From Paragordius varius (taxonomy: Eukaryota > Animalia > Nematomorpha), in assembly GCA_964247055.1 (NCBI GenBank), contig OZ176052.1, forward strand, positions 9,610,001 through 9,674,000: 64,000 nt of DNA, in the 5' to 3' direction. Of the stretch, positions 39,601-63,513 are shown piece after piece. Position numbers and translations under genes: made by a program. Position 1 is the stretch's first letter. Every line of letters starts with the position of its first letter. The notes below the pieces were generated by a model, which ran no database searches, was not told the DNA's origin, and worked only from the letters and a program-made list of their open reading frames with translations.

Positions 39601-42057
39601 TTTTCGCTGGCCTTCAAATATTTAGATACAGCTGCACCACCCATTATACCAAAAATGCCAGCAAAACATGTCACTAGTCCAAAAACAAGACCAATTTCTT
39701 GTTGATTCATAGGCTCCTCACTGGGCGTTACAAGCCAATCGAAATCATCCTTGATGGCTGATGATGAAAGTTGCATGAGCGTAGGGGCCCAAAGTGCCAG
39801 TGCACCTACCACAAAAGAAACGCAAGTAACGCCAAATGTAATTCTTCGATACGAAGTTATACCTATGAGTCGTCGTATATCCCCTAGTAACCATGCTAAA
39901 ATATTATAGATAGATTTAGAATTGCAATTTTTGAAAAGAAAATAAATAAAAAATAATCAGTTGTCTGCTCTGCCTTTTTAATTAAGGGGTAAGAATAGCC
40001 CGGTGAAAGCATTATTAGGTGCCTGTCAAGGGCTGATGATAATGATGCAAAAATTGTAGGAACAAAATTTTATGAATATACAGTCATGCATCCTTTATCT
40101 TATCAAAAATTTATTTTTTTTCGTTAAATGGGTATAAATATTTGGTAAAGAATGGAAAAAACAAGAGGTCTATGGTAATTCTTACACTTTTTTGATAAAT
40201 ATGATATTGTTAATACCATAGAGCTCTTGTCTTTTCCATTCTTCAAATTTATACCCATTTAATGGAAAAAATAAATTTTTGATAAATTAAAGGATACATG
40301 ATTGTATATATATATATATATATATATAGGTTAAGTGTGAAATTTTCGAAAATAATTCATACAAAAGCCTCGACATATGATAGTATTCCTTTCAAAAAAT
40401 ATCCATAAAATGTAAAACTAACGATATAAGAAACACATTATGCAATAACAACAATTATCACAGTGTAAGGAAGTTTAAACCTATTGATTTTAAAAAACAT
40501 TGATTCCAATATAAATTAGCGATATCGGAATTAACCAATATGGCTTCATATGACTAATGTCAAAAGAATATTCACACAACTAATAAGTATAATTATTACG
40601 AATTTTGTTATTTACCCTTGATGACTCCGTCGATTATAAACTGATGGATTATAGCGTTATAAATGCATGAGGCATATTTATGCATGTTACCAATTTTAAA
40701 ATCATTTTGAGCCCATTTATTTTGCAGAACAGTATAAAGAATTGATATTTTCCGTTTAAACCTGGCAAGGGTTATGTCTGTTTTACGCCTTAAATAATAG
40801 CATATGTTTTGTGTCGCGGATATATCGATATAAAATTCCGATAATTGTGGTTTGCTTTTCCCGTGTGTTTTGGGAGATAATAGGGGTTGAGTTTCTAAAA
40901 AAACAGGAATAACAACAAAGATAAAGCATATTTGTTAAAACTTCTGTTATAATCTATACAGTTTGATAAACATAGAATGATGGTGAAATTCGCTATTTCT
41001 AATCTGCCACATATATTAATCATCAGAACTACAAAAATAATGAATATATTTTAGTTTTCATTAATATGGTAAGCGGAATTAATAATTTTATACAAAAAAT
41101 TATTTAGGTAAATATTTTAAGAATTAAAGTATAATATCCGAATAAAGCTAATAAATTAAAATTAATTGATTTTTTGCCAATTATGTAATGAGTTCCAATA
41201 TTACCTGTATATTCTTCGTCATTACCTACAACATTAGTGGAAGTTGTTGGTATTGACATGGTAGTAGAAACCGTTAGAGGCTCAGTGCTTTCGAGATCAA
41301 ATGGACCATTTATATTATTAATTCTCCAATAAAATATAATGATTAAGACGACTCCAATAAGCGGAGTTAAGCGTAAACCCCATTCCCACGTGCCAGTCAA
41401 TTGAGCCAACGAAGATGAAACAATGTATCCTAGACCACTACCAACTGGTATGGCTAAATAAAATGCACTCAAACATAAAAGTCTCGTTCTATTAGTATCA
41501 ATGTATTGGTAATCAATGATTGATGTGGTATGATTATTATTCTTCTTATCGTCTGTATAATTTACTACGGAATCATATGATTCTGATATTTCCGTATTGC
41601 TTTTATTGTCATGATGACTATTTACAACTGGAAAAAGATCCGCAAAAATAGTTGGTGTTATTGTAGAGTAGCATGCTTCTCCCACACCAACCAGTGCTCG
41701 AGTGGCTAAAAACACTCGAAAATGAGTGTTTGCAATCAAGGAACAAATAAATGTTGAGGTACACCATATACACATCGACATAATTAGTAATCTTTTTCTT
41801 TGATGTCGGTAACGGTCCCCTAAATAACCTGCTATGGGAGCTGACAACATGTATGCACATACAAAAATTGTTTGCACAAGTCCAGCCAATCTATTGTCCA
41901 AATCAAAATAGTGTTCAATATCCAAAAGAACTGACGCAACAGCATAACGATCCATGTAGTTAAGTAAATTTATTATACAAAGTAATGTCACGGTTACATA
42001 GGCTTCATAAAGATAAACATTCGAAACTTTAGTAACCAACGGTTCTTTTTCATGCAT
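36697..42057 (-). CDS. SPNS1: Spinster-family MFS lysosomal lipid transporter (~677 aa)
   Basis: Exons 41205-42057, 39595-39895, 39194-39438, 37484-37795, 36697-37019 (sum 2034 nt, in frame). Motifs NLLNYMDRY, AGYLGDRY, RALVGVGEACYSTITPTIFADLF, FYLAIPVGSGLGY, GALALWAP, SHALGDASSAYIVG match Spinster; SPNS1 is the nearest family label, paralog not resolved. Confidence 0.92.
37949..38996. mobile_element. 5'-truncated, 5'-inverted RTE-clade LINE insertion in Spinster intron 3
   Basis: Minus segment 37949-38424 encodes the RTE C-terminus (GWAKFNQL..VRP..YASETW..RLWYFGH..GRPKTTW..DRDIYR); plus segment ~38425-38996 encodes RT (MLYADDLVI, GLKINIEKTK) and a PHD finger; 14-bp direct repeat AGTTAAAAATATGT at 37935-37948 and 38994-39007. 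Confidence 0.9.
40081..40304. mobile_element. CAGTCATG-family MITE (224 bp) in Spinster intron 1
   Basis: Long inverted arms related to the TIRs of 25974-27010; TA flanks, followed by (TA)n. Confidence 0.8.
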
Positions 42058-47359: not shown

Positions 47360-50300
47360 TTATATTTTATTCAGGATATCTTGCAAATAACGGATATCAT
47401 GTTTTAGATTATCGGTTGAATTAGTGTCATAGTCGTCTTTAATAGATTTTCCACTTGCAACAATGTTACTTTGCATCATGATATTAAAGTTGGCCAAAAA
47501 ATCTTGACATACATTTGTTATGGCATATCTATATACAATTAATTATAAAATATCTTTTGGTAATACAGAATGAATAAATATACATTACTAGTTTTTTTTT
47601 AATATTCCCAGATAGCATAAAGAGTAAAAAGAATTTTTATTGACAATAACAATAAAAAAAATAATTATGAGCCAATTATGTGGACCTTTGCTGAATATGC
47701 AATAATTAATGAAAAACTAGAGACATACTTGTTAATATTTTTATTGTCAAACATGTCTTCATCTACCATATAATGCATAAATTTGATAAGAGTAAGGGCT
47801 ATGGAATGGTTATATACACGATTTGAAATCTAAAATGCAAGGATAAAAGGAATATAGGGACTCTGCTCATTATATAGAAAAAATGCTTCAATTAAATACA
47901 CAGGCATAAATATTTACAAACCCAAATTTTTATCTTCAGTGCAAATAAATTATTTTATAATGCTTTGTTTCAAGTTTGCATATATATTGGTTTTAACAGA
48001 TTTAAAGGTTTATTCGGCAATAAAACTCCAAAAATAGCAATAAAAAATTGGCTTAAAAATAATAGGTTATTGTCTATTACAAAAAATGTTTTAATTTAAT
48101 AATTACGTAAATATTTTAGTTGTAAAAAACACGAGTTTAACAAAATATTTGGTTATCGGATGACCTATTAATATGTATTTACAAATAAGATTTTCCGAAA
48201 TATCAATAAATACAGTAATTAAAAATATTATATGAGGAATTGTATATATAAATAGCTAAAGGTTGGGTTTATCTTAATGAATAATTTATCTGTATGTTTT
48301 TACCGAACTGTTAAACAACTCCACGTATTCTTTAATTATTCTATCAAGCGGTATTCCCAATTCAATGAACGTTTTTAATATAACACTATTTGGATCGACT
48401 TGATTCTCAAAAGTAAAATTGGCCAAATATTTGATGAGAAAAGCTACGATAAAATATCCATTAATGCAGTAATCAAACAAATATAATCTATCATTCAATT
48501 GGTATAAAAAAGTAATATATATATATATTATATAAGATAAAAATAACTTTATATTAAGTATAATAGAATATGGCTTCAACACCAAAATATTTACACTACA
48601 TACCTAATGGAAAATATAGGTTAAACATTGTTGAATTTGAGGTATTGGCTTTTGATAATTGATTTCGACCTATTCGCGTTATTGTATTCAGTAAGGATTG
48701 TAGTTTATATTGTGCCAAGGATTTGGATGTAGACGGACTAATATGATGGAAATTTTAAAATCATAATTTCAGCAATAATTAAAAATATAAAAAAGATAAA
48801 ACGTAAAACTAAAAGCCTAATATTTTATAATTATAATTTCTACATCATAATTTTGACCTTTTTTGGGGGTGGCTAAATAAGGAAAAATTGATAAAACACT
48901 CAATTATATATATTTCAATTGTAATCATTTAAGTAATATAAAATAATCAAAAGATTGTATTTTTTAAAAATTAGTTTTACCGTTTTTTCATTATAATTCT
49001 AATTTGAGTATATCAAGCGCTTTTAGAAATTAGTTATAAAAAAAGCCTAAAACTTTCCAATAAAATCAGGATAGTCAAAAATCTTTTTTAAAAAATTAAC
49101 CTGGCAATCGGTGATTTAATATCATCCTTATGTAATGTGTAATCCAAAATTTTGGTCCAAACCTCACAAATAAGGTCGGAATCTGTATTAGAAGCTACTT
49201 GAATGATGTCAAGTTCCGTTTCATAGAGGTAAAACTTTTCACAAAAATCCTCATAAAGCTAAAAAATGTTTCAAAAATATATTATTGACGTAGAAAAATT
49301 TATGGCAATCGATAAAATAATAAAAAAAATTCTTGCATACTTTAGTGAGATCAAATATTTCAATATTCAGTCTTTCTATTGAGCGTAAAACTAATGAATC
49401 CTTGGTATCGGCATATATTTGTTGTAATTGATTTATAATTTTCATCTGTTTTAAAAAATAAGATAATAAATAAAAGTCAATTTTTAAAGTTTTGAAGGGT
49501 AAAATTTTAATGTTTTTTTGTGTAAAATACTTGAATTTGAGCCACATCAATTTTATCCTCAATTTCTTGTATCATTTGTTGCAGGGTTGTAAAATCGGAG
49601 TTTGCCGTAATATTAGCCGATTTTGGCAATGATAAAGCAGTACGAGCACATAAAAGCGCTTTTGATAAATACTCCAATCTGGCAGGTAGCAGAATTGATT
49701 TGCTAAAAAATATATAGAGCATATATTTATTAGGAAATACTAAATTAGTAAAAAGGAATGAAAAAGAACCCATGGAGTGAAAGATACAGGGTTTCTTATT
49801 CGTAAACCATACAAACAATAAATGTCCGTCCCTTTTCAAATTTTATTTTGACTTTTAAAATATCATTTACTTTTCCAATGAAAACACCAAAATATTTTTT
49901 GAAATGATTTATTTCATAAAAATTGCCTAAACAATACACAAATTCAAGTATATTTGCAAAATGGTATGCAAAGTTTAGTGATTGTAGTTTAAACCAAAAA
50001 CTTATTTTATAATTGGGAAAATGAATAATAATCAGCTATGTTAGTTAGTTAAGAATCGCTGTTTATGTAAAGGGATTAAAGTAAAGGGTTACCAATAAAA
50101 TTTATAATATAAAAGAAGTGTATATTTAATATTAAATAGTAAGTTTATTAAAAGTAGCATACTCTGATAATTCAGCAAGCATCATAAAAACATGGGCAGC
50201 TTCATGGAATTGTTTGGAATTTTGCAAAAATTGACATTTAATTTCTAGCGTATGCTTACGTTCAGAAACAACAGTTGTTGTATCGTTTAATAAGGGTTGA

Positions 50301-53300
50301 TTTGTACTAGGTTGAGTTTTATCCATATTTCCAAAATACGTTTGAATGAATGGTGATTGAATCTAAGATTAATACTTATTTATTTTTTTGTCAAAAAAAA
50401 TATTTCCTATTATATTTTTAAAAATTAACAACGGATAAATTATATTTAAAAAAATAAAGTATTTGATAATTTTGTTATTTCTCTTAACAAATGTTTAACA
50501 AACTAATAAAATTTTATTATATTGTTACAAAATAAATTATAGGCTTTACTAAAACATATATTACAATAATAAATATTAAGAACATGCAAAAAAAAGTTTA
50601 AAAATATCTGATACAAATAAATATGAAAAAATACTTTTGTAAGGTAATCTCCAAAGCCATGATCCTTCAACCAATCGTAAAACAAATAGGAAAAGAGTTC
50701 ATCGCTGCTATTTGCACATTCCTTTAACAGTTGGCCAAACTAAAAATAAAAATTAACGGTAAAAAGTATTCCGCTGCACATAAATAATAAATTAACAAAG
50801 ACATAATAATAATATTTAAAGTGTAGTGTAACACCTAATTTCATAATGCAAATGACTTTAATAAAATTCATGAAATATATTCTAAATTCATATTATCAAG
50901 TATTATCCCTTTGCTTTCAAATAATTAAACGAAAATCACAAAAACCCGATTGATTTATAAAAAATACGTAAAATAACCTCTCTCTTTGTCGATAACTTAT
51001 ATGTATCAGAGGCTAAAGTTAAATTTGAACCGGCAAAAGATTGGGACATATTTGGATTAGAATGATTTAACATATCGTATTGTGTATCATTCGATGATAA
51101 GTTTCCCAAATTATCACCACCATAGAGTGATTGATAATGGCCAAGTGCAGTCAGCAATATTTCATAACAATGCATTCTAGATAAGATTTATATATTTTGA
51201 AAGATAATTTTTTTAAGTTTTTTTTAAATATAATTCACCATTTTTTGTTGTAAAATGAATGGAAATGTAAATGGGTAACGCAGTCAATTATAAATTGTAA
51301 TTACACTAGTCGACAAATTTGGACATTTTTGAGCACCACCACTCAAACTTTTAAATTATGACGAATTTCAGTGTTTTAATACCAAATGTGAAAAAATTTT
51401 TGATCCCGCCAATCAGAATTTTGAAATATCATAGGTTTTTCAATTTTTCAAAAACAAGAGAAAATCGAGAGAAAATTAAATATAACTTTATAATAAAATG
51501 TTATTATATTATAAACTTAATATCATTTAATAAAGCGTTTTAAACTCTATCTTTTGAATATAAATATGTCATTTAAATATCAGAGAAAAAAAATAGTACG
51601 GACTTAAACGTCAAAATTTAGTCTTTTTCTTTCAAGTGAATTTTTAATACGTATAAAAATTTTTTAAAAAAATACTAAAAAAGGTATTCTATGGTTTAAA
51701 CCTTCGGCTTTTAGATAGGCTATATTTTTTTTGTTAGTTTTCGTTCTTTCGAGTATTTATTAGGCTTTTTTTCTTGAGTTGGTTCTTACAAAAAATCCTT
51801 TATTCATACCTAGTGGATATACTTTATTTTTTAAAATTATTGGTTGATTTGTATTTTTAATTTCAGATGGATGTTGTGTAGCCACTTTTAGTAGAATTTA
51901 CTATTAAGGGATTGGACCATTTGTATTTACCTAATCTTTTTATTCAATTTAATTGTAGAATTTATCTAACTTTATTCTGTGAATTGGTTAATTTGACATG
52001 TCAATTTGCCTGGATTTTGCTTGCAAGTCTCTCTTATCGGGCTTTACGATTACTTATTGTTCTTTGCCATATCTGGCATAATTGGATCGCTTGGGGGATA
52101 TGCAGAGCTTGTGCAGCCGCCCGGATCTATCACACTATACATAAGCCCCTTGTTTTAATACTTTGGCTCTTGGCTTGTTTAGTATTTTATTTAATGCCTA
52201 GAATTTTGTTATTCATGCATGGAATATTACTTGCATCGACTTGTTCGTTTGAATATTTAAACATATATACACGAGGAATGATTGTTATTTTTAAATTAAA
52301 TACAAATTTAAAAATTAAATTTCGGAAAAATCCTATTGGTGGCCTCAATTTTCTTTTTTGTTTTGGCCTTTCCATGCCATTAGGTATTAGAAAATGCAAA
52401 AATAATGGGGTGGTGCAAAACCTTGTTGAGCAGTGTTATGCATTGGTTATGTCGGATTTAAAGTTTTAACGTTTGGCCTGTATAATTCCAATTTTTACTG
52501 TAAATTAAAACCTTAAAAATATAATTTCAACGTAAATGTTACCTCTTTCTATAAATGTCAGCTGAAAATTTAGTGCCCATAGGTTCATCATCATTCATAT
52601 AAAAGTAGCGATAATCGGGTGATATATTGTTTTGGTTATATGAACCGTTCATGTTAAGAAACGATGAATTTTTGGTGGACAACAGATTTGTCATATATGA
52701 TTTGCCAGCATTAAGGCATAATTTGATTATACCTTTATGGCAAAAATAAACACAATATATGCGTAAAAAATTATTATAAAACCAGTTTTAACTTTCATAT
52801 ATTAGTTGATTGTGCAAAAACAATGAAAAATGTCAATAGTATTAAGGAATTTCGGTACTTGCGTAAAATAATATCATGCAACCATCAAATAAACTCGTCA
52901 ATTTTAAAAACTATTTTAACATGAGTATAATAGCCCTCTTTGACAATAATTATCCATTTTAAATTATAATTTTTTAAACTATGATGCTCTATTATCAGTT
53001 TATCATCCATGTAAAATTATTATCAACAAAACTAATCAACTAAAATGCATAAAAAACAATCATGAAATATACCATAATAAAATCCACATTTTTGGAATTG
53101 TCCACATACACTTTGTAAATTGTAATTATCAGGCCCGATAGATGTGTAAAGGTTAAGAGCTTTATGTAAAAACTCGTGTTTAGTTTGTCCCAAGGAATTA
53201 GATGTAGTATTGTCATAAATATTTTTAGCATTAACACCTATCATATTTGATCCATTCATTATAGATACCCCGTCAGGCATATTTGCTGGTATTTTCAGGG

Positions 53301-56300
53301 CCGATATTAATAATTCATTAGCCTAATTTTGAATATTTAAAATGTATGTTACTAATTGTTTCATCAGCAAACGCATATTTTACTTTTTAAAAATAACCTT
53401 ACCAGTTAATATTGTTTTCATATATTTGAGTAAAATTATAATAGATTTTCTTTTGTGTATATGTTTTTGTGGCCTATTATTTATAAATTATAAAAATAAT
53501 GAGGAGGTTCTATGTATCAAAAAATATAACCGAAATTATATTCATTTGAAGATATAACCTAAACGGTTTTTTTTAAAAAATACATTTAGATATCAAAAAA
53601 AATTGATTTATTGTTAGAAATTTAGAAAAATAAATTTATTATCCACAAACATAGGTTTTTAAATAACTACTATTTAAATAGAAACAAATTGGAAAATAGC
53701 GTAAAAAGAGTAAAATTACTTTGGATATAACACCCTGATCTGGTCCATAGAAGGTTGGAGCAATATCCTGAATCTTATGAATTAATGGTTCACAAACCGA
53801 TTGAAGAGTAGGTACATCTGATAACAGGGCATTTTGTCTTCCCATGAGGTATGTAGGGGGATTATTGATATTATCAAGTTGAACGCATGCATAAACATTC
53901 AAGTATGCATTAATAAGTCGCGTAATAAGTTGATTAGTACTGTTCTTCATTGCTATATGCGGACTTTGATTATAATTATAGTCAAGACTTGATTCGAAAT
54001 CTGCATATTGTGATGAAACATTTGGGCCAAGAGGTGTAAGGGGAGTCTTTGTATTTTTAGTTGTCGAGTTTGTTGACAAAACAATGGAGGAAAATGTTTG
54101 ATTAAAGAAATCATTTTGATCGCCCTATAAGATAACAAATCAATTTAGATAAGATTAATTTTATAATAGAGTAGAGTTGCGCTAGACCAATTCCAAATGG
54201 ATTTGACTGCCGTTTATAAAAACATTCAAAAACTATAAAACTAACTCTGAAATCTTATAACATTTGCATAATAATTGAAATATATCATATCCGAACATAT
54301 TTACACGTTTAATTTTGTTTGGTTTACTTACAAGATATATTAATTAACTGTTTATGACCATAAATGCCTAAATTAAGTGGTCAGGGGGTTATTATTTTAA
54401 TAATTATTAAAAACGCAACTATATTGATGAGGTTTATAGCAGGTCAACTCTATTGATCAGCAGAAATATATATATATATATATTTATTTATATATATATA
54501 TATAGCATTTACAGTTCAAATTCACCCTTAAACAATTCAAATTCACTCTCGAACAATTTAAATTCACCTTAAAATAAATTAATTTTTAACATTATATTTT
54601 AACTATATTTTTTATAATTTAAAAAAATAAAATTAGGTAAATTAATATAATACTGAAAAAATAATAAACTATGCCATAAGTATATACTTCTTTTTGTGGA
54701 TGAGTTATATTAACCCGAAACACATAATTTATTTTTAAGGTGAATTTGAATTGTTCAAGGGTGAATTCAAATTGTTTAAGGGTGAATTAGAATTGTAAAT
54801 GGTATATATATATATATATATATGTTAAACCATATTTAGGGAAATATAATTCTTTTTGTATAAAATACCGTGCTCAATGATTCAATGACGAGTCCTATGT
54901 GATAAGCATATTCATTGGATTTTATGGTGGAGTTTATTTGGGTATTGGTGAAAGAAAGAGGTGGTGTAAGTAAAATGCTATATAAGTGAGCAAGTTCTCT
55001 GCTGATGTTGACTAAACGCACAAATAAATTGGCAAATTTTTGTCCATCCACCGTATTGCTTTCATCTAAATAGCATATGATTAAAATATGTATAACAGCT
55101 AATAGTAAATTCCTATTTACAAAAGATATTATTAGATTTTGAATATTTCAAATATTTACCGTTTGAAATCATTGTTGAATATTCCCTTTTAATGGATGGC
55201 ATAGAAGGTGGGTCGGATACTCTAGAATCGGTATGAGAAATTATATATGTCAATGATTCATTTATTGTAATATAATATCCAAAGATGAGTAAAGTATGGT
55301 AATTGTTACCAATGAAGCTACAAATTTAAATAAACTTATATAATATTGTATTCTTGAAATCCTATTACAATTGGGTTGTTAAAAAAATGTAAATTTTAAA
55401 ACTTTTTATCAATATCTATAATATCAAAACCCACATTAACCTTTTGACTGTATATAAAATAATTTTTTATAAACTAAATACTTGAATCCGTTTAAATTTA
55501 AAAATTAAAGTACACCAAATCATCTATATATAAGGTGACACGAATTTTTATTTTATACTTTCCCTTGTAAAAATTGAATAATTTGTATAAAAATTGTAGA
55601 GGCGTGATGGTATATAGGAAGGGCGCCGGACTCCTACACTGCTTGCCAGAGTTCGAACTCCGAAACTACGCAATTTTTCCATAGTCACTGTCAGCCCTAG
55701 GCAGGAGAGTGTTAAAAGTCTTTACATATCCGGGTACAATTTAAGCCCCTACCATATAAACAAAAAAAGGAAAAAAAGAGACTCTAAATTTTATTTTTTT
55801 TAAAAAAAAATTGTACCTATTGAATGAGCCAACATGACCAGTGGATTCTTGTGACATAAACTCTTGTTTGACATTCGGTGTAGCAGGATAAGATACCATC
55901 CCAGGAGAACGAACAAAACTTTGATGTGGATGATCAAAATCATAATCATTAGTAGTGGTGTTCAAAGTTTGTTCACGATGTTTCAGTATTCCTTTGGGTG
56001 TATTTGTTATGGTTGGAGTCTTTCGAAATCTCATCTCCTGATTTCGATTGGCAAAGGCTAAACTACTGTTAGTAGTTGATTTAGGACTACTTTTATTTGG
56101 GGCACCGGATGCGAAAACTGTGTTTACTAAAAGGGCCCAACCCTCATCACGTCGGTTAAGGCATTGGGATAGGGCATCAAGGCGTTTAGCAAGACATTTC
56201 ATATCGTTTGCATTGTACAATGGTAAGATACGTAATAAAATATTTTTATCAGGGTTCAAAGGCGGACTATTATTATTAAATTGTTGCAATAGGATAGAAC

Positions 56301-59300
56301 GAGGTAAAATACGATATTTCTCCAATTGATCAGGGGTAAGGCCACCTAAAACAGAGCAACAGGCTTCAAATGTAGTGCACAAGGGCATGTTCCACACAGG
56401 TCTATTATGAAAGAAAAAAAAATGAGTTTATGGAAATAATTAGAAAAATTTTTTGTAAATAATTTCCATTTACTTAACTATCCGCCAAAAATATCTCAGA
56501 AACGCTCGCTGTATATTGGTAATAGAAGAGTCCAATTGATTTCGCAGCATATATTGATTCTGTTGGCTATTTAGTATGGTGGATTGGTATGGGTCAGTTT
56601 GATAACTCATATTATTTTGATCCCTAAATCGGCTACGTTTGTTTGGACTAGATTGCGACATATTTTTTGAAAAATCTATTAAAAGAAAATAATTGTTTTT
56701 TAATTTAATAACATATATAAATACAAAAACATTAACAAATCATAAAAAAATTACAAAGGATATAAAATTAAATAATTATGTCACTTTTATAAAAAGGTGT
56801 CGAAGAATATTTAACATTGGTTAAATCAGCTTCTGCATATGTCCTTGATGGGTTGTTTTGTTGGAAATTTGTCTCAACGTTTTCCGTTAATCTGTCATAA
56901 TTTCTACAAAAATTGAAGATCCATTCTTTGATCTGTAATATATATTTATATATATATATATATATATATTTAAATATCTTAATATGAGTAATATTATATC
57001 TAAACCAATTTAAATGTAAAAAAATAAATTTATCATATTTTAAATAATCTTTTTAGGCTTATATAATATCATCTTATGTAATTATGTAGTTTACCAAACA
57101 TTGGTTTTACAAAATTTAGTTAGAATTAAAACACATTTTTTTCTTTTACTAAAGCTTACTTGTTGTTGTCCTGGGCCATTAGAACATAACAGATGTATTG
57201 CAATGCTTAAAGGGAAAGATGTATCCATAGTTTTGACTGATAATGTATTATCATTCATTGAATTTAAATTTGTATGACCATTTGCATAAATAAAATCGTT
57301 GGTGTAAGTATCATTAGTACCTAACCCCCCACCAACCATGGGAGCATAATAGGGAAATGATGTTAAATCAGGTTTCGGTATTGATCCATTTGTGTAATCT
57401 TAAAGCAATAAAGTTAAATTGTTTTTAATATATAAGATGGTCTGTTTTTAATAAAAAGTCCCTGTAAATCAATTTGATCGTACTTATTTTGATGCACTTT
57501 TCTAATTAAAAAACTATAATCTTAATATATAACCGTTAAAAGTTGCATATAACCTTACCAAAAGCCCCCTCCCTAATGAGCTAAAATGAACAACGGTATA
57601 AACTAACTAAATCATACATGTAATATACACAAAACAACTGTTTAAAGTTGTATTTCTTCCTTTTTACAAATTTTTCACGATTAATAAATGGGCCTAATAT
57701 AAACTTACTCCTAATATTAAACGATTAATCATACTAATAAAATCCATTTTTTAATGATGTGGATAAATAGCCTTAAATTCCCATACTTGCGTCATTATAA
57801 GATATTGACTACGGTGTAATATATCGGTATATTATTTCAAAATTGGCCATACAAAAATACCTGTAGGTATATAAGGAGTAAGAGAAGACAAATTTGTAAT
57901 AAGGCTTCGAACTAACAAACTATTGATATCTCCATTGCTGGCAAGCAATGACGTTTTTAAGAACGAGGAAGGATCGGCAATGTTAAACGTTATTAGTTTC
58001 TGTAGATTAAAATGGAAAATATAAAATCCTATTTTATGAGAGCATTAGTAAAGAAATAAAATTGTCAGCCGGTTTGTTGTGCCTCCATACATAAATGTTC
58101 GAAGTATATATTTTTGAATATTTTTTTAAGAGTTATAATTTTTTGGGAGCTGTAACACTTTAATTTTCAATACTTTGCACTGCATATTTGTTATCTTACT
58201 TTAAGATATTTTATCTTTTTTTCACATTTTTTTTAACGTAAATGGTTATCCAAAGATTTTTTACAAAAGTGACAAAAAAACAGATAACTGCAAATTATTG
58301 TATACTAAAATAATTATTTTTTAAATCCTCCAATGAAGAAACAGCTTCTGCCCAAAAAAGTAATGGTTTGAATTCAATCCTGTTATAATTATTTACATAT
58401 CATTTTTCAAGGAGAGCATTTATCTTTATTTATAATTTTAATTATTTAGTCCAAATAAAAATTTACCCTAGGAGTTAAAATAATGAAAGATCGTGAGCGC
58501 TGATATATTTCCTTTTGAGCACGTGACCGATAAAACTGTTTCATAGGTCCATCAAGTGAAATGGCTAAATTTATTTTATATTGCAGAAGTTTGGTAAAAC
58601 TTGGCAAAGTAACCATATTTTGTCCATCAAAAGTTTTACTTTCACCAATAAATGTTTTAATTTTATTTAAAGTTTGTTGCGTAGTATTAGCACTACTATC
58701 AGAAGCATTAAAAGATGGATTTGAGCTATTAATTTGTAACCATAAATTCTTAACAAATTCCTCCACGTAACTATTCATAGTTATAGGTGTTAATTGTGTT
58801 CGTTGAGTTGTAAAGGGCAAATCGCAGGCGTTGTAATCATCAATGCATTCAATAGCCTGGATTTTCCCATCAATTGAAACTTTGGACTAAAATAGATAAA
58901 ATAAAACCTATTTGACGCATTAAATGTAAGTTGTTTGTTTTTAATTCATTTTTATAGTTATTAAACTTTTTGTTTGATAATGCTTACTCGTAAGAAACGA
59001 ACATTAAATATTTGAACATTTACATTCAAATTGTAAGTAAAGGTTTATATAAATCATATAATTTTACCAATTGTTCCATTAAAATAGGTTTGTGAGAGAA
59101 AGCATCTGAATTACTTATCCAAACAGTGTCAAAAAGTTCATTGTCACATGTTAAAAATAATGTGGCACCTATTACAAAGAGTTTTGAATTTTTTTTAATA
59201 TTTAACTTTTATTTAAAAATTAAATTTAATATTAACCATTATCATGCAATCCACCATACACTTCGGCATTAGATGATATTCTTTGGAATGTTGCGCTCAG

Positions 59301-62300
59301 TGACATATTATTTTCTATATAAAATGTATTAAACGCTTAAAATTTAGCCTACAAGATAAGATTATTTATGATTTTACCATTTGCATATTACCACATTATA
59401 TATATATATATATGCATCGCTATAGTATAATCAACAAATAGTTTCTATCTTAAAAGTTTTACATATAAGTAAAAATCTTTATAGAGATAAGTTATTCAAT
59501 TTTTAATATGTTGTAATTAGAACCATAATATGTAATCGCTCCTCAATATAGTTATTATTAAAAATTTGGCATCAGTTAAAAAATAAAATTGATCAAATGT
59601 AAACATCTATGTAAAACAAAATATCAAAATTTCTTAGTTTTCTTAATTTATAGTGAAAAAACTGGTTTTCCATATGTACAAACACAAATTAAAATGCACG
59701 TCCCAAAAATTATGATATTGGCAACAAAAAAACTATACTATTTACTTCCGTTCATAATTTTTATGACTAAAAAAATTTTTTTTATAAGTAATATTAACGA
59801 TAATATTTTTTATTTTTGTTATTAAATATCTCATTTTTTTAACATTTTCGATTATGCTGGATTTACATAACTTATTAAATTAAAACCTTTCTAATCAAAA
59901 TCCCTTCTTGTGTTTTATAGGTACTAATATAAATATTAAAATATATAATAACCATCAAACACCAAATTTGTTTCCATTTAATAAAAATTAAAATGTGATG
60001 ATATGATAAAGAAAAAAAACCTTGCCCAAAAAGTCCCGCGTTCATAATAACGCCATTAGAATTTCCAGTTGCCGCATAACCCGGCGGGAATCGAATATGT
60101 AAAAGTTTGAGCATAAATGGAACACAATCTATCCAAGAATAATTGGTGCTGTTATCATTTTTAATTCCTCCTGTAGGCCCCATTTCTCGATTGGTAAGTA
60201 TAGAATTTTGTCCATTTATTCCATTTACATTATTATAGAAATTGAAGGGCACATTTAATGGGGCTAATATATCATTATCTTCAGCGTAAGCCGTAAAATA
60301 ATAACGAAAACCTATTTAAAAAATCATATATTTATATATAGGAATAATAAACAGTATAATGTAGATGTACCAGTAGATGTTATGGCCATTAAATGTAAAC
60401 TTTTTGAATCCAAGATAGATAGAGGACAAAGTGAAACAATGCGACCAAATTTATCATTTTCTATCAATCTAATAGGAATATAAAATAAAAATATGTTATT
60501 ATTTAATATGGTTTAATCTACAGTAGTCTACACTCATATTGACCCTTCAATTTTTTCTTACAATATATATAAAAATTGGGGAAATATAATTTTATTTGAT
60601 ATTTCATAAGATTGCTTTAGCTCATTCATTATAAGGGCTTCAAAATTCCTATTTGTGGGAAGGTATATTCAACTTGAATATATAGCAAAAATTATCTAAA
60701 AAAACTCTTAAAATTGCATCATGATAAACATAGGTTAATTGATTTATGGGCAGCATTTACGAGGGAAAGCACATTAGAGGGGCCCCTATGTGTACACGGA
60801 AACAATTAACGCTCTTAATGGCAAATTAACCTAATACTATAACTTGAAGATTAAACTAATAAATTTTTGACAAAAATGTAATTTTTAAAACTTAAACAAG
60901 TTTCCATATAACAAACAGGTACTATAAACCTCTAATTAAATTAAATTATTTTTTTAAATTATAAACATAAATATAAAATGTACTTAGTGATAGCCATAGC
61001 CCGACTATGTATTTCATGATGCGGAACTGTGACTATATGTGTCATTTCTGTACCAAAAGCTCCCAAGTAAAAAAGCTACATTTCGATAATAAAAAATAGT
61101 TTATAAATTAATTTGTCACTTTTAATAACTAAAAATAAATAGGAAATCATCTCTGAATATTTAGTAATTGTGTTTATAAAGATCTAAACTAAATTAACCC
61201 CATTTAATGGTACAACCTATTTCAATTAACCAGGGATACTAACTTTTTAAAAACGAATTCCAATGTAACTTTAAAAAATATATACCTGTATACTACCACG
61301 TTCGGAAAGCGTATAAAGAATACCACGAGATTCATCCATAGCTATTTGTATCAACGGATCTAAAAATTTGTTTTAAAATTAAATTTTACTTTAAATTTTC
61401 AAAAATAAAATATAAAAATTAAGCAACTTTATTAATACCTGGCGGGGAAAAAATATTTCTTAGATTTGGAAATATCAAAGAAGACAGCTTTCCTCGCGAA
61501 TGATTAATAAGCCATGCTTTTTTACCCAACCAACTTTTGGTGTACTAAAAAAGGTAAAACATGTAATAAATAATTGAATTGATACATGTCGAAATTCGAT
61601 AATGAAGGCATGGTCAAAACCATCTTTTGTGTTTAAATTATATATAATATACGATAATTAACAATATTATATGTTGTAAAAGTAGCAAAAAACCGATAAT
61701 CCTAGCGACCTAATATCATATTAAAACTTGCTGCAATATGTAATTCTCACTTCTTAAAATATGGAAATTTAGAACACAATTTGACAAAAAAGATTAATGA
61801 AAAAATTTCAAATTATTAGACAAAATTTTTAACAGGTAAAATTTAAACATATAAACTGACCAATATTAATAACGCAATAAAAAATGTATCAATTATAAGT
61901 TTTATTTGTTGATTTTGACTAAAAATAGTTTAACAAAATTATTTCATAATATATCCAATTTTACAAAGTTCGTTGGAAAAAAACCTGATAATACAATTCG
62001 TATAGGGATCCATCTTGGCCGGCCAAGAAAAATCTGTCATAAATGACTGAGTGATATGCATGAGTAAAGATGACACCATCACTGGATATTGTGACAAATG
62101 GTTCAGGTTCAATACAAAACGAATTATTGGGAGCTAAATTTGAATTTGTTTCGTCTTGAGCGTTCGAAAGTTTTAGGAGAACAATATTTTTGTGGGATAT
62201 AAGACAAAGCAGATAATCAAAAGTGATTTCGGTTGTATTAGCTTTAAAATTTAAAATCAATAAAAATTATGTCAGAAATTGTTTAAATAATTAACCATCA

Positions 62301-62773
62301 CAAATAATTTTATACTTTTCGGTTCTATAAGAGCAGCAAATGTTATAGATTCGGTAAATCCATCATAACAAAGAATCTCAGACGAAACATAATTCCAAAG
62401 ATAAAAGGAGCTTCTAGCAATAAAATACGCAGATTTAATTTGTTTGAATAATCCGATTTTTTGCTCTCCTTCATCCACTAATATAGAATTAAAATCTTAT
62501 ACCATTTATCAAATCAATGAGTTCCAAAGGAATGATAGAAGTTTGATAATCTTCGACAAATGAAAATTTAGAAAAAAGATATTTATCCGATAAATCAAGC
62601 ACATAATCATTCTCTACTAAACCACTTATTGAAGGATATGCTAAAATATATTTAAACTTACAAATATTTTTAATTTTTAATAGCCGTGTTAGCTGTTTTT
62701 CATTATCTTCTAAATTTAATCCAACATCTAACAAGAGTTTATTAAAATTTGAAATATTTGGCGAAATAGGCAT
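47360..62773 (-). CDS. NUP155: Nuclear pore complex protein Nup155 (~1,948 aa, 31 exons)
   Basis: Exons: 62662-62773, 62503-62640, 62316-62477, 61985-62241, 61439-61544, 61286-61359, 60984-61075, 60371-60468, 60021-60311, 59068-59168, 58467-58886, 57861-57999, 57160-57398, 56785-56932, 56474-56675, 55817-56401, 55160-55317, 54869-55065, 53720-54124, 53073-53322, 52543-52732, 50978-51176, 50635-50739, 50163-50362, 49531-49702, 49341-49445, 49101-49258, 48604-48737, 48304-48443, 47729-47829, 47360-47528 (5847 nt; every junction GT-AG and phase-consistent). Motifs FYLWNY..YDGFTESI, RFFLAGQDGSLYELYYQ, DPLIQIAMDESRGILYTLSE, LLHIRFPPGY, SKANELL, SDELFSYLFYDWL, RLEYLSKA, EIEDKIDVAQIQ, YFPL match Nup155/Nup170. 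Confidence 0.93.
54503..54804. mobile_element. AATTCACCCTT-repeat MITE inserted in a (TA)n tract, Nup155 intron
   Basis: Arms GCATTTACAGTTCAAATTCACCCTTAAACAATT.. / ..AATTGTTTAAGGGTGAATTAGAATTGTAAATGG; flanked by TA repeats. Confidence 0.75.
55597..55740 (+). mobile_element. tRNA-derived SINE / tRNA pseudogene (Arg-CCT-like loop)
   Basis: A-box-like TGATGGTATATAGG, B-box GAGTTCGAACTCC, loop CTCCTAC, partial acceptor pairing GTAG..CTAC; the stems do not pair properly, so it is not a functional tRNA. Confidence 0.5.
62478..62502 (-). other. 25-nt spliceosomal intron (Nup155 intron 2)
   Basis: GTATAAGATTTTAATTCTATATTAG; removal is required to join two conserved reading frames (retention gives frameshift and stop). 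Confidence 0.85.
62641..62661 (-). other. Candidate 21-nt spliceosomal intron (Nup155 intron 1)
   Basis: GTAAGTTTAAATATATTTTAG; in frame without a stop, but has a consensus donor and acceptor, and removal restores the recalled orthologue spacing LL-x7-P. Confidence 0.65.
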
Positions 62774-63257
62774 GGAATTTCACAAATTTGAAAATGGAAA
62801 AAGTAAACGGCTGTAAAATATATAAAAATAATAGTTTTTTTGTAAATTGTAACCTTATATAGAAATTTGTCATCATCATGAATATATTAATATTAACGTG
62901 CGTAGTTAATATTTTTTTCGAAAAGGTATAATTTTTTTGCGGAATAATTGTTATTTTTTAATCTTATTGAAATACATGGCAGTTTAACCAAATATCTTTT
63001 GGGGCTAAGCAAAAGATGAATTTAAGATTTCGATAACCAAAGGTGTGGTTTTTCTAAGGCGCATGTTTTAAAAATATTTGCTATAAAATATGTAAAAAAA
63101 TTCTCATCTCTTTTGGTTTTGGCCCTTACAGAGCCATATAAGAACGTATTATACCCTTTAGTCGTGGCTCTATATTAGACTATACAAAATTTGAGATAAT
63201 TTTTTGTATAATTGGGCGAAACCTAAAAGCTTCATTCCGGAAAATATCCCTAAAATA

Positions 63258-63513
63258 TACCACTTACAATTGAAATTCACATTTAAACAATTTTAACTCA
63301 CCCTCGAACAATTAAAACACCAGAAATATATTCTTATAACAAAGTTTATTATTTTTCAGTAATATTTTAATTTTAAGCGTAATTTGAAATATAGGTAATT
63401 TTGTATCTTAAAAAACACATAATTTATTTTGGTTTGAATTGTTCGAGGGTAAATTTAATTTGTTCAAGAGTGAATATGAATTGTTTAAGGGTGAATTTGA
63501 ACTTTAAATGGTA
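63258..63513. mobile_element. AATTCACCCTT-repeat MITE ~0.5 kb upstream of the Nup155 ATG
   Basis: TACCACTTACAATTGAAATTCAC.. / ..GTGAATTTGAACTTTAAATGGTA arms. Confidence 0.7.

Follow-up and report, generated by a model that had tools for sequence, protein, structure and literature searches.

At the 5′ end of a hairworm Nup155 gene, two segments, of 21 and 25 nt, are likely to be genuine U2-type GT-AG introns, orthologues of ancient phase-1 introns that have shrunk to this size. The gene lies on the minus strand of the window, by which we mean the whole 64,000-nt stretch of DNA that was analysed, and the coordinates, sequences and common phase 1 of both segments are as the first-pass annotation had described them. 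From the DNA sequence we infer the excision of the two segments in RNA, their branch points and the efficiency with which they are spliced. As far as we are aware, introns shorter than 30 nt were long thought to be absent from animals.

The extent of the gene and its first four exons and introns are given below in window coordinates.

47685..62773, minus strand: Nup155 gene, alignable coding part; approximately 31 exons, colinear with Nup155 of Gordionus montsenyensis
62773-62662, minus strand: exon 1, 112 nt; ATG at 62773, 37 codons plus 1 nt
62661-62641, minus strand: micro-intron 1 (putative), 21 nt, GTAAGT..TTTTAG, phase 1; retention would keep the frame and add no stop
62640-62503, minus strand: exon 2, 138 nt (46 codons), both ends in phase 1
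62502-62478, minus strand: micro-intron 2 (putative), 25 nt, GTATAAG..TATTAG, phase 1; in-frame TAA if retained
62477-62316, minus strand: exon 3, 162 nt; matches Nup170/Nup155 chains at approximately residues 100-150
62315-62242, minus strand: intron 3, 74 nt, phase 1, of the ordinary short class, from the spliced alignment
62241-61985, minus strand: exon 4, 257 nt, ending ..LYELYYQ; matches Pfam Nucleoporin_N and residues 161-242 of Nup155 in PDB
61984-61545, minus strand: intron 4, 440 nt, phase 0, at the pan-metazoan position after ..YQ

The Nup155 gene and the sizes of its introns

Exons were searched one by one, and the joined translations were scored locally by script. When exon 4 was compared with 1.84 billion representative proteins, the best match (E value, 8e-9; 46% identity) was a protein annotated as Nup155 of 'Gordionus sp. 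m RMFG-2023', which is Gordionus montsenyensis, and the next match had an E value of 4e-5. The closest relatives are hairworm sequences, which places the DNA within Nematomorpha. The genome is AT-rich, with a GC content of approximately 27%, and that of G. montsenyensis is 26.9% (10.1101/2023.06.26.546503). A search of the genome (110.6 Mb, 44 contigs) with the Gordionus protein gave matches at the Nup155 locus only, at 37-67% identity. This sole genomic match, at such an identity, indicates that the gene is a single-copy orthologue in a species other than G. montsenyensis, most probably another hairworm.

Tblastn and spliced alignment demonstrated that the gene is colinear with Gordionus Nup155 over residues 21-1737. 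Exon 1 aligned with the N-termini of the orthologues and starts with MP.. as in Gordionus, and solved Nup155/Nup170 structures (PDB) were matched by single exons. In Pfam searches with single exons, Nucleoporin_N was matched with 19.3 bits, under its cut-off of 23.7, and Nucleoporin_C with 26.7 bits, over its cut-off of 25.9. A 218-aa ORF (55741-56397) could be aligned to the middle region of the Gordionus protein only in the colinear alignment; searched alone, it gave no match in Pfam or PDB.

To model the introns, Gordionus Nup155 was aligned to positions 62900-46500 by a custom protein-to-genome spliced alignment (BLOSUM62, GT..AG introns, minimum intron of 15 nt). The alignment had a score of 1504 with 30 introns, and both the 21- and the 25-nt introns were chosen unprompted. 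The other 28 introns measured 63, 68, 72, 74, 78, 79, 82, 85, 109 and up to 1366 nt, with exon boundaries that are approximate in the poorly conserved middle of Nup155, and the majority of these 28 coincide with intron positions in Gordionus. The first-pass annotation had counted 28 further introns and given them a minimum of 59 nt; the count stands, and the minimum is close to the 63 nt of our model. Because no modelled intron falls between 25 and 63 nt, the two size classes that it had proposed hold for the Nup155 gene.

A 22-nt segment, GTAAAT..TATTAG at 55120-55099, was also considered as a micro-intron and was rejected: its flanking ORFs did not convincingly resemble Nup155, and in the spliced alignment it falls inside an 854-nt intron. 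The whole window was scanned for segments of 18-35 nt that bridge ORFs, and 58 GT..AG segments were found against a median of 83 for other dinucleotide pairs; the scan is powerless, because overlapping open frames are common.

Homologous introns and other readings of the two segments

Exact protein-to-locus splice maps were made for Gordionus, Priapulus (priapulid), Capitella (annelid), Patella (mollusc) and Clytia (cnidarian). In all five, the first two introns are in phase 1 and lie 138 nt (46 codons) apart, and their lengths range from 39 to 3762 nt. The orthologous intron 1 measures 42 nt in Gordionus, 549 nt in Priapulus, 56 nt in Capitella, 3762 nt in Patella and 412 nt in Clytia; intron 2 measures 39 nt in Gordionus and 103-1123 nt in the four other phyla. 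In a MAFFT alignment, the exon ends of the hairworm gene fell in the same columns and the same phase as the introns of the orthologues. Alignment of orthologues had been proposed as a check on the micro-introns, and its outcome, the same columns and phase 1 in five phyla, is in their favour. Junction 1 precedes the motif [H/Y/Q]P[S/T]xSG and junction 2 follows LPxEL(V/I)xx. No alignment gap was present at either junction, including in comparison with vertebrate and moth proteins, and the residue spacing after removal of both segments is that of seven orthologues. One of these is a vertebrate, to which the first-pass annotation had already compared the spacing. The shared columns and phase indicate that the micro-introns are orthologous to introns older than the cnidarian-bilaterian split.

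The closest counterparts are introns 1-3 of Gordionus Nup155 (CAK9302504), which agree with those of the present gene in position, phase 1, the 138-nt exon 2 and junction context. The context of junction 1 is identical in both hairworms (..T/GTAAG...AG/CA.., with slashes at the exon ends), and the codon split by junction 2 directly follows the conserved ..IN in both. The first three introns of Gordionus (OX940786.2), of 42, 39 and 42 nt and all in phase 1, are likewise far shorter than its later introns (131-3978 nt). They are all longer than 30 nt, unlike the first two introns of the present gene, in which the series runs 21, 25 and 74 nt. Intron 3, of 74 nt, has its homologue in the third Gordionus intron (42 nt), and Priapulus, Patella and Clytia also have introns homologous to it.

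Other features of these gene models were also observed. The RefSeq model of the Gordionus protein (XP_065320125) begins within exon 4, so that the first three exons are absent from it. In a 92-aa Gordionus isoform (CAK9302506), an alternative donor is joined to the same acceptor, so that the intron measures 50 nt and translation stops early. Both hairworm genes lack a phase-2 intron of the WNYE region that is present in all four outgroups, as well as a phase-1 intron approximately 30 residues past the ..KPK intron that Priapulus, Patella and Clytia have. In Capitella, that post-KPK column contains a phase-1 intron, and the ..KPK intron itself is missing. On these gene structures, the two missing introns look like a loss common to hairworms. 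A search from the Gordionus N-terminus returned no second hairworm protein, and the protein collection yielded no transcript-derived protein with the stop-free ORF 62492-62773.

The two segments differ in what follows from retaining them. The 21-nt segment, which the first-pass annotation had placed in frame one exon upstream of the 25-nt segment, does leave the frame open on read-through, and one Ser is replaced by eight residues (CKFKYILA). Since its length is a multiple of three and it is stop-free, a functional protein would result with or without its splicing. These properties give some room to the reading that only the 25 nt are an intron and that the 21 nt, a former intron turned exon or one that is mostly retained, are translated in the poorly conserved N-terminal linker. 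The homologous 42-nt intron of Gordionus is likewise in frame and stop-free, the N-terminus is weakly conserved, and the segment is polymorphic, as run X1 has A for the T of the assembly at 62651 (plus strand), which would change Lys to Asn if translated. Nevertheless, we regard this reading as unlikely. The segment lies exactly at the ancestral phase-1 position with a perfect donor (GTAAGT) and the acceptor TTTTAG, extra residues are found there in no orthologue, and the length differs from that in Gordionus (21 vs. 42 nt) while the flanks align without gaps. When the N-terminus was aligned to that of Gordionus, the score was 107 with the 21 nt spliced and 87 with them retained, and a run of seven stop-free codons is not improbable by chance. 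Splicing of the 21-nt segment is thus the preferred reading, although the intron could be partly retained.

Retention of the 25-nt segment introduces an in-frame TAA, so its removal is needed for an open frame, and the conserved frame of exon 3 is reached only by such a removal, as previously claimed. When every GT..AG pair of 15-120 nt was tried as a junction of exons 2 and 3, only four kept the frame open (25, 34, 37 and 94 nt). The 94-nt intron (62557-62464) was ruled out because it deletes the conserved PxEL motif. The first-pass annotation had stated that other nearby AGs would give at most 37 nt; the 34- and 37-nt forms use the same donor at 62502 as the 25-nt form. Intron 2 might be real and end at a downstream AG, with a length of 34 nt (62502-62469) or 37 nt (62502-62466). 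Both forms keep the frame open, and their alignment scores (197 and 198, respectively) are near the 201 of the 25-nt form, so that the scores by themselves leave the acceptor ambiguous. We consider them improbable, however, as three or four residues would be deleted and the G-L-F spacing would no longer match that of the seven orthologues. The 25-nt acceptor, TATTAG, is T-rich, whereas the alternatives lie within purine-rich coding sequence, and 3′ splice-site scanning usually settles on the AG that comes first after the branch region. The acceptor of the 25-nt form is therefore favoured.

That nothing is spliced here, and that the frame break reflects a pseudogene, an assembly error or a sequencing indel, is hardly credible in view of the DNA contigs described below, the presence of only this Nup155 in the genome, open exons colinear with Gordionus over approximately 1,700 residues, and the eight extra residues, absent from every orthologue, that an indel would leave behind. 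A search for sequencing runs that cover the stretch returned no RNA run, and DNA-like contigs without splice joints, from the four best runs, were compared with the assembly. A 949-nt contig of run X1 spans 61981-62929 with no gaps, and a 1037-nt contig of run X3, from a more divergent sample, spans 61797-62833 with eight substitutions and no gaps. A contig of run X4, which carries another species label, is identical over 62436-62601, including the 25-nt intron. The frame-fusing indel near 62490 that could have undone the first-pass reading was looked for in these independent contigs and was seen in none of the gap-free ones (X1, X3 and X4). One contig of run X5 has five gapped positions, which lie somewhere within 61797-62833 and count in favour of an indel. 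The DNA contigs of three samples thus reproduce the sequence, two of them spanning both segments without indels, and an assembly error is excluded.

In window positions 57400-63000, the contigs of sample S2 (X3/X5), which bears the same organism label as the best match of the assembly, are only 90-99% alike, and those of run X4, with the other species label, are mostly at least 99% alike. This pattern suggests cryptic diversity or mislabelled samples.

A second gene, the snRNAs and a possible route of splicing

An intron of similar size was found in the gene for RPS13. It is 27 nt long (GTATTT..CTTTAG; contig C7, about 4567503-4567529), contains an in-frame TAG and lies between ..RSVPT and WQKMTAEEVK... 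The Pfam match of RPS13 runs over 55 codons for 46 model positions, with the one TAG inside, and the 27-nt intron is flanked by ordinary introns of approximately 130 and 100 nt.

Of the spliceosomal components that the first-pass annotation had proposed to inspect, the genes for U1 and U2 were examined. A full-length U1 gene has the canonical 5′-site-binding sequence ACTTACCTG, and a full-length U2 gene has the canonical branch-point-binding sequence GTAGTA. There was no sign of altered snRNA recognition in the recognition sequences of U1 and U2. Both micro-introns contain A residues approximately 10-13 nt upstream of the AG, which are candidate branch points, and the TTAAT within the 25-nt intron fits yUnAy.

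Dozens of matches to U2, from full-score to degenerate, are spread over approximately 270 kb of contig C3 (257000-528000). Smaller U2 clusters were found on contigs C2 and C5, and U1 copies are clustered on C6.

The micro-introns would probably be recognized by intron definition and removed by the major spliceosome. The canonical U1 would pair with the near-consensus 5′ sites (GTAAGT and GTATAAG), and the canonical U2 would select an A in the T-rich remainder, approximately 10-13 nt before the AG. A polypyrimidine tract would not fit into such an arrangement, in which only some 10 nt would separate the branch point and the 5′ site. Introns 1 and 2 have probably shrunk in this lineage while the later introns of Nup155 stayed at 63-1366 nt, and occasional retention of the 21 nt would still yield protein. 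The first-pass interpretation, two real ultra-short introns at the 5′ end of a metazoan-type Nup155, is supported by reading frame, homology, the DNA contigs, the size classes within the gene and the RPS13 intron.

Comparison with known short introns

In layout, the hairworm micro-introns are like those of flatworms, and in size they are like those of myxozoans and dicyemids. The microintrons of the flatworm Opisthorchis felineus, and of other trematodes, cestodes and monogeneans, have a length peak near 37 bp and a second peak near 90 bp (PMC6530080). As in flatworms, the short introns of the hairworm form a separate class beside kilobase introns in a repeat-rich genome, are mutually adjacent and biased toward the 5′ end, have near-consensus splice sites with scant room for a polypyrimidine tract, and are of a kind overlooked under the default minimum intron lengths of annotation software. 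They are the first two of 30 introns and thus short, clustered and 5′-biased in the flatworm manner, a bias that is read here from one gene per species and RPS13 rather than from a genome-wide distribution. Unlike the flatworm microintrons, they measure 21, 25 and 27 nt, which is below the 30-bp limit, and they belong to an ecdysozoan lineage.

Among 51 animal genomes surveyed in a 2026 publication, only those of myxobolid myxozoans and Dicyema had introns of less than 30 bp, with medians of 22-27 bp in myxobolids and Dicyema japonicum (PMC13644364). Dicyemids had rightly been among the tiny-intron groups named in the first-pass annotation, from which the myxobolids were missing. The hairworm introns resemble those of both groups in being GT-AG introns of less than 30 bp at conserved positions between conserved exons, with a canonical U2, A residues shortly upstream of the AG, and parasitic hosts. 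In myxobolids and Dicyema, however, nearly all introns are short, the genomes are compact and the splicing motifs are reduced to GTa and AG. The hairworm, in contrast, has a GTAAGT donor, and only the 5′-most introns of its Nup155 are tiny, the remaining 28 of 30 being 63-1366 nt long.

Micro-intron 1 is stop-free and has a length divisible by three, a class in which Paramecium introns are depleted. In this respect it is unlike the introns of ciliates, which are unicellular and have a uniformly tiny intron size genome-wide, but the size range and the canonical GT-AG splicing by a conventional spliceosome are alike. The lengths cited for ciliates in PMC13644364 are approximately 25 nt for Paramecium and 15-16 nt for Stentor.

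Short hairworm introns have, to judge from the literature that we found, gone undescribed: the 51-genome survey does not mention nematomorphs (PMC13644364), and the word 'intron' is absent from the paper on the G. montsenyensis genome, of which 64% is repeats (10.1101/2023.06.26.546503). We tentatively propose, as a possibility that we would not yet bet on, that the hairworm phylum carries a 5′-proximal class of micro-introns derived from ancient introns, with lengths of 39-42 nt in Gordionus and 21-27 nt in the present species.

If this is true, hairworms would be the third independent animal lineage with introns of less than 30 nt, and the first of these lineages in which a repeat-rich genome has such introns alongside kilobase introns and canonical splice signals. 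The earlier groups in the 2026 survey are two tiny, genome-reduced parasite groups, and the hairworm would add an ecdysozoan lineage whose tiny introns are no by-product of genome compaction. Tiny introns that stand beside introns of up to 1.4 kb, and that derive from introns of 56-3762 nt, would mean that intron shrinkage is separable from genome shrinkage. Such a genome would also offer a natural system for studying how a canonical U1/U2 spliceosome works when as few as about 10 nt separate the branch point from the 5′ site.

The same proposal would have consequences for annotation. Run with default settings, aligners and gene predictors will annotate the 5′ ends of such genes wrongly, and with gene finders and aligners that require a minimum intron of approximately 20-40 nt, hairworm gene models would be truncated or broken. 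An example would be the RefSeq model of Gordionus Nup155, from which the first three exons and a portion of exon 4 are missing. Some of the low BUSCO scores and of the gene losses reported for Nematomorpha could then be annotation artefacts.

Two further features were observed in the neighbourhood of the gene. Just upstream of the Nup155 start, a 53-nt inverted repeat (63266-63318 and 63432-63484), with arms that are 81% complementary and 113 nt apart, is overlapped by a 21-nt tandem repeat (63433-63501); the inverted repeat resembles a small element of the foldback or MITE-like type. On the minus strand at 41104-42057, a 317-aa open frame matches Pfam MFS_1 (Major Facilitator Superfamily; E value, 2.6e-26) and represents a neighbouring transporter gene.
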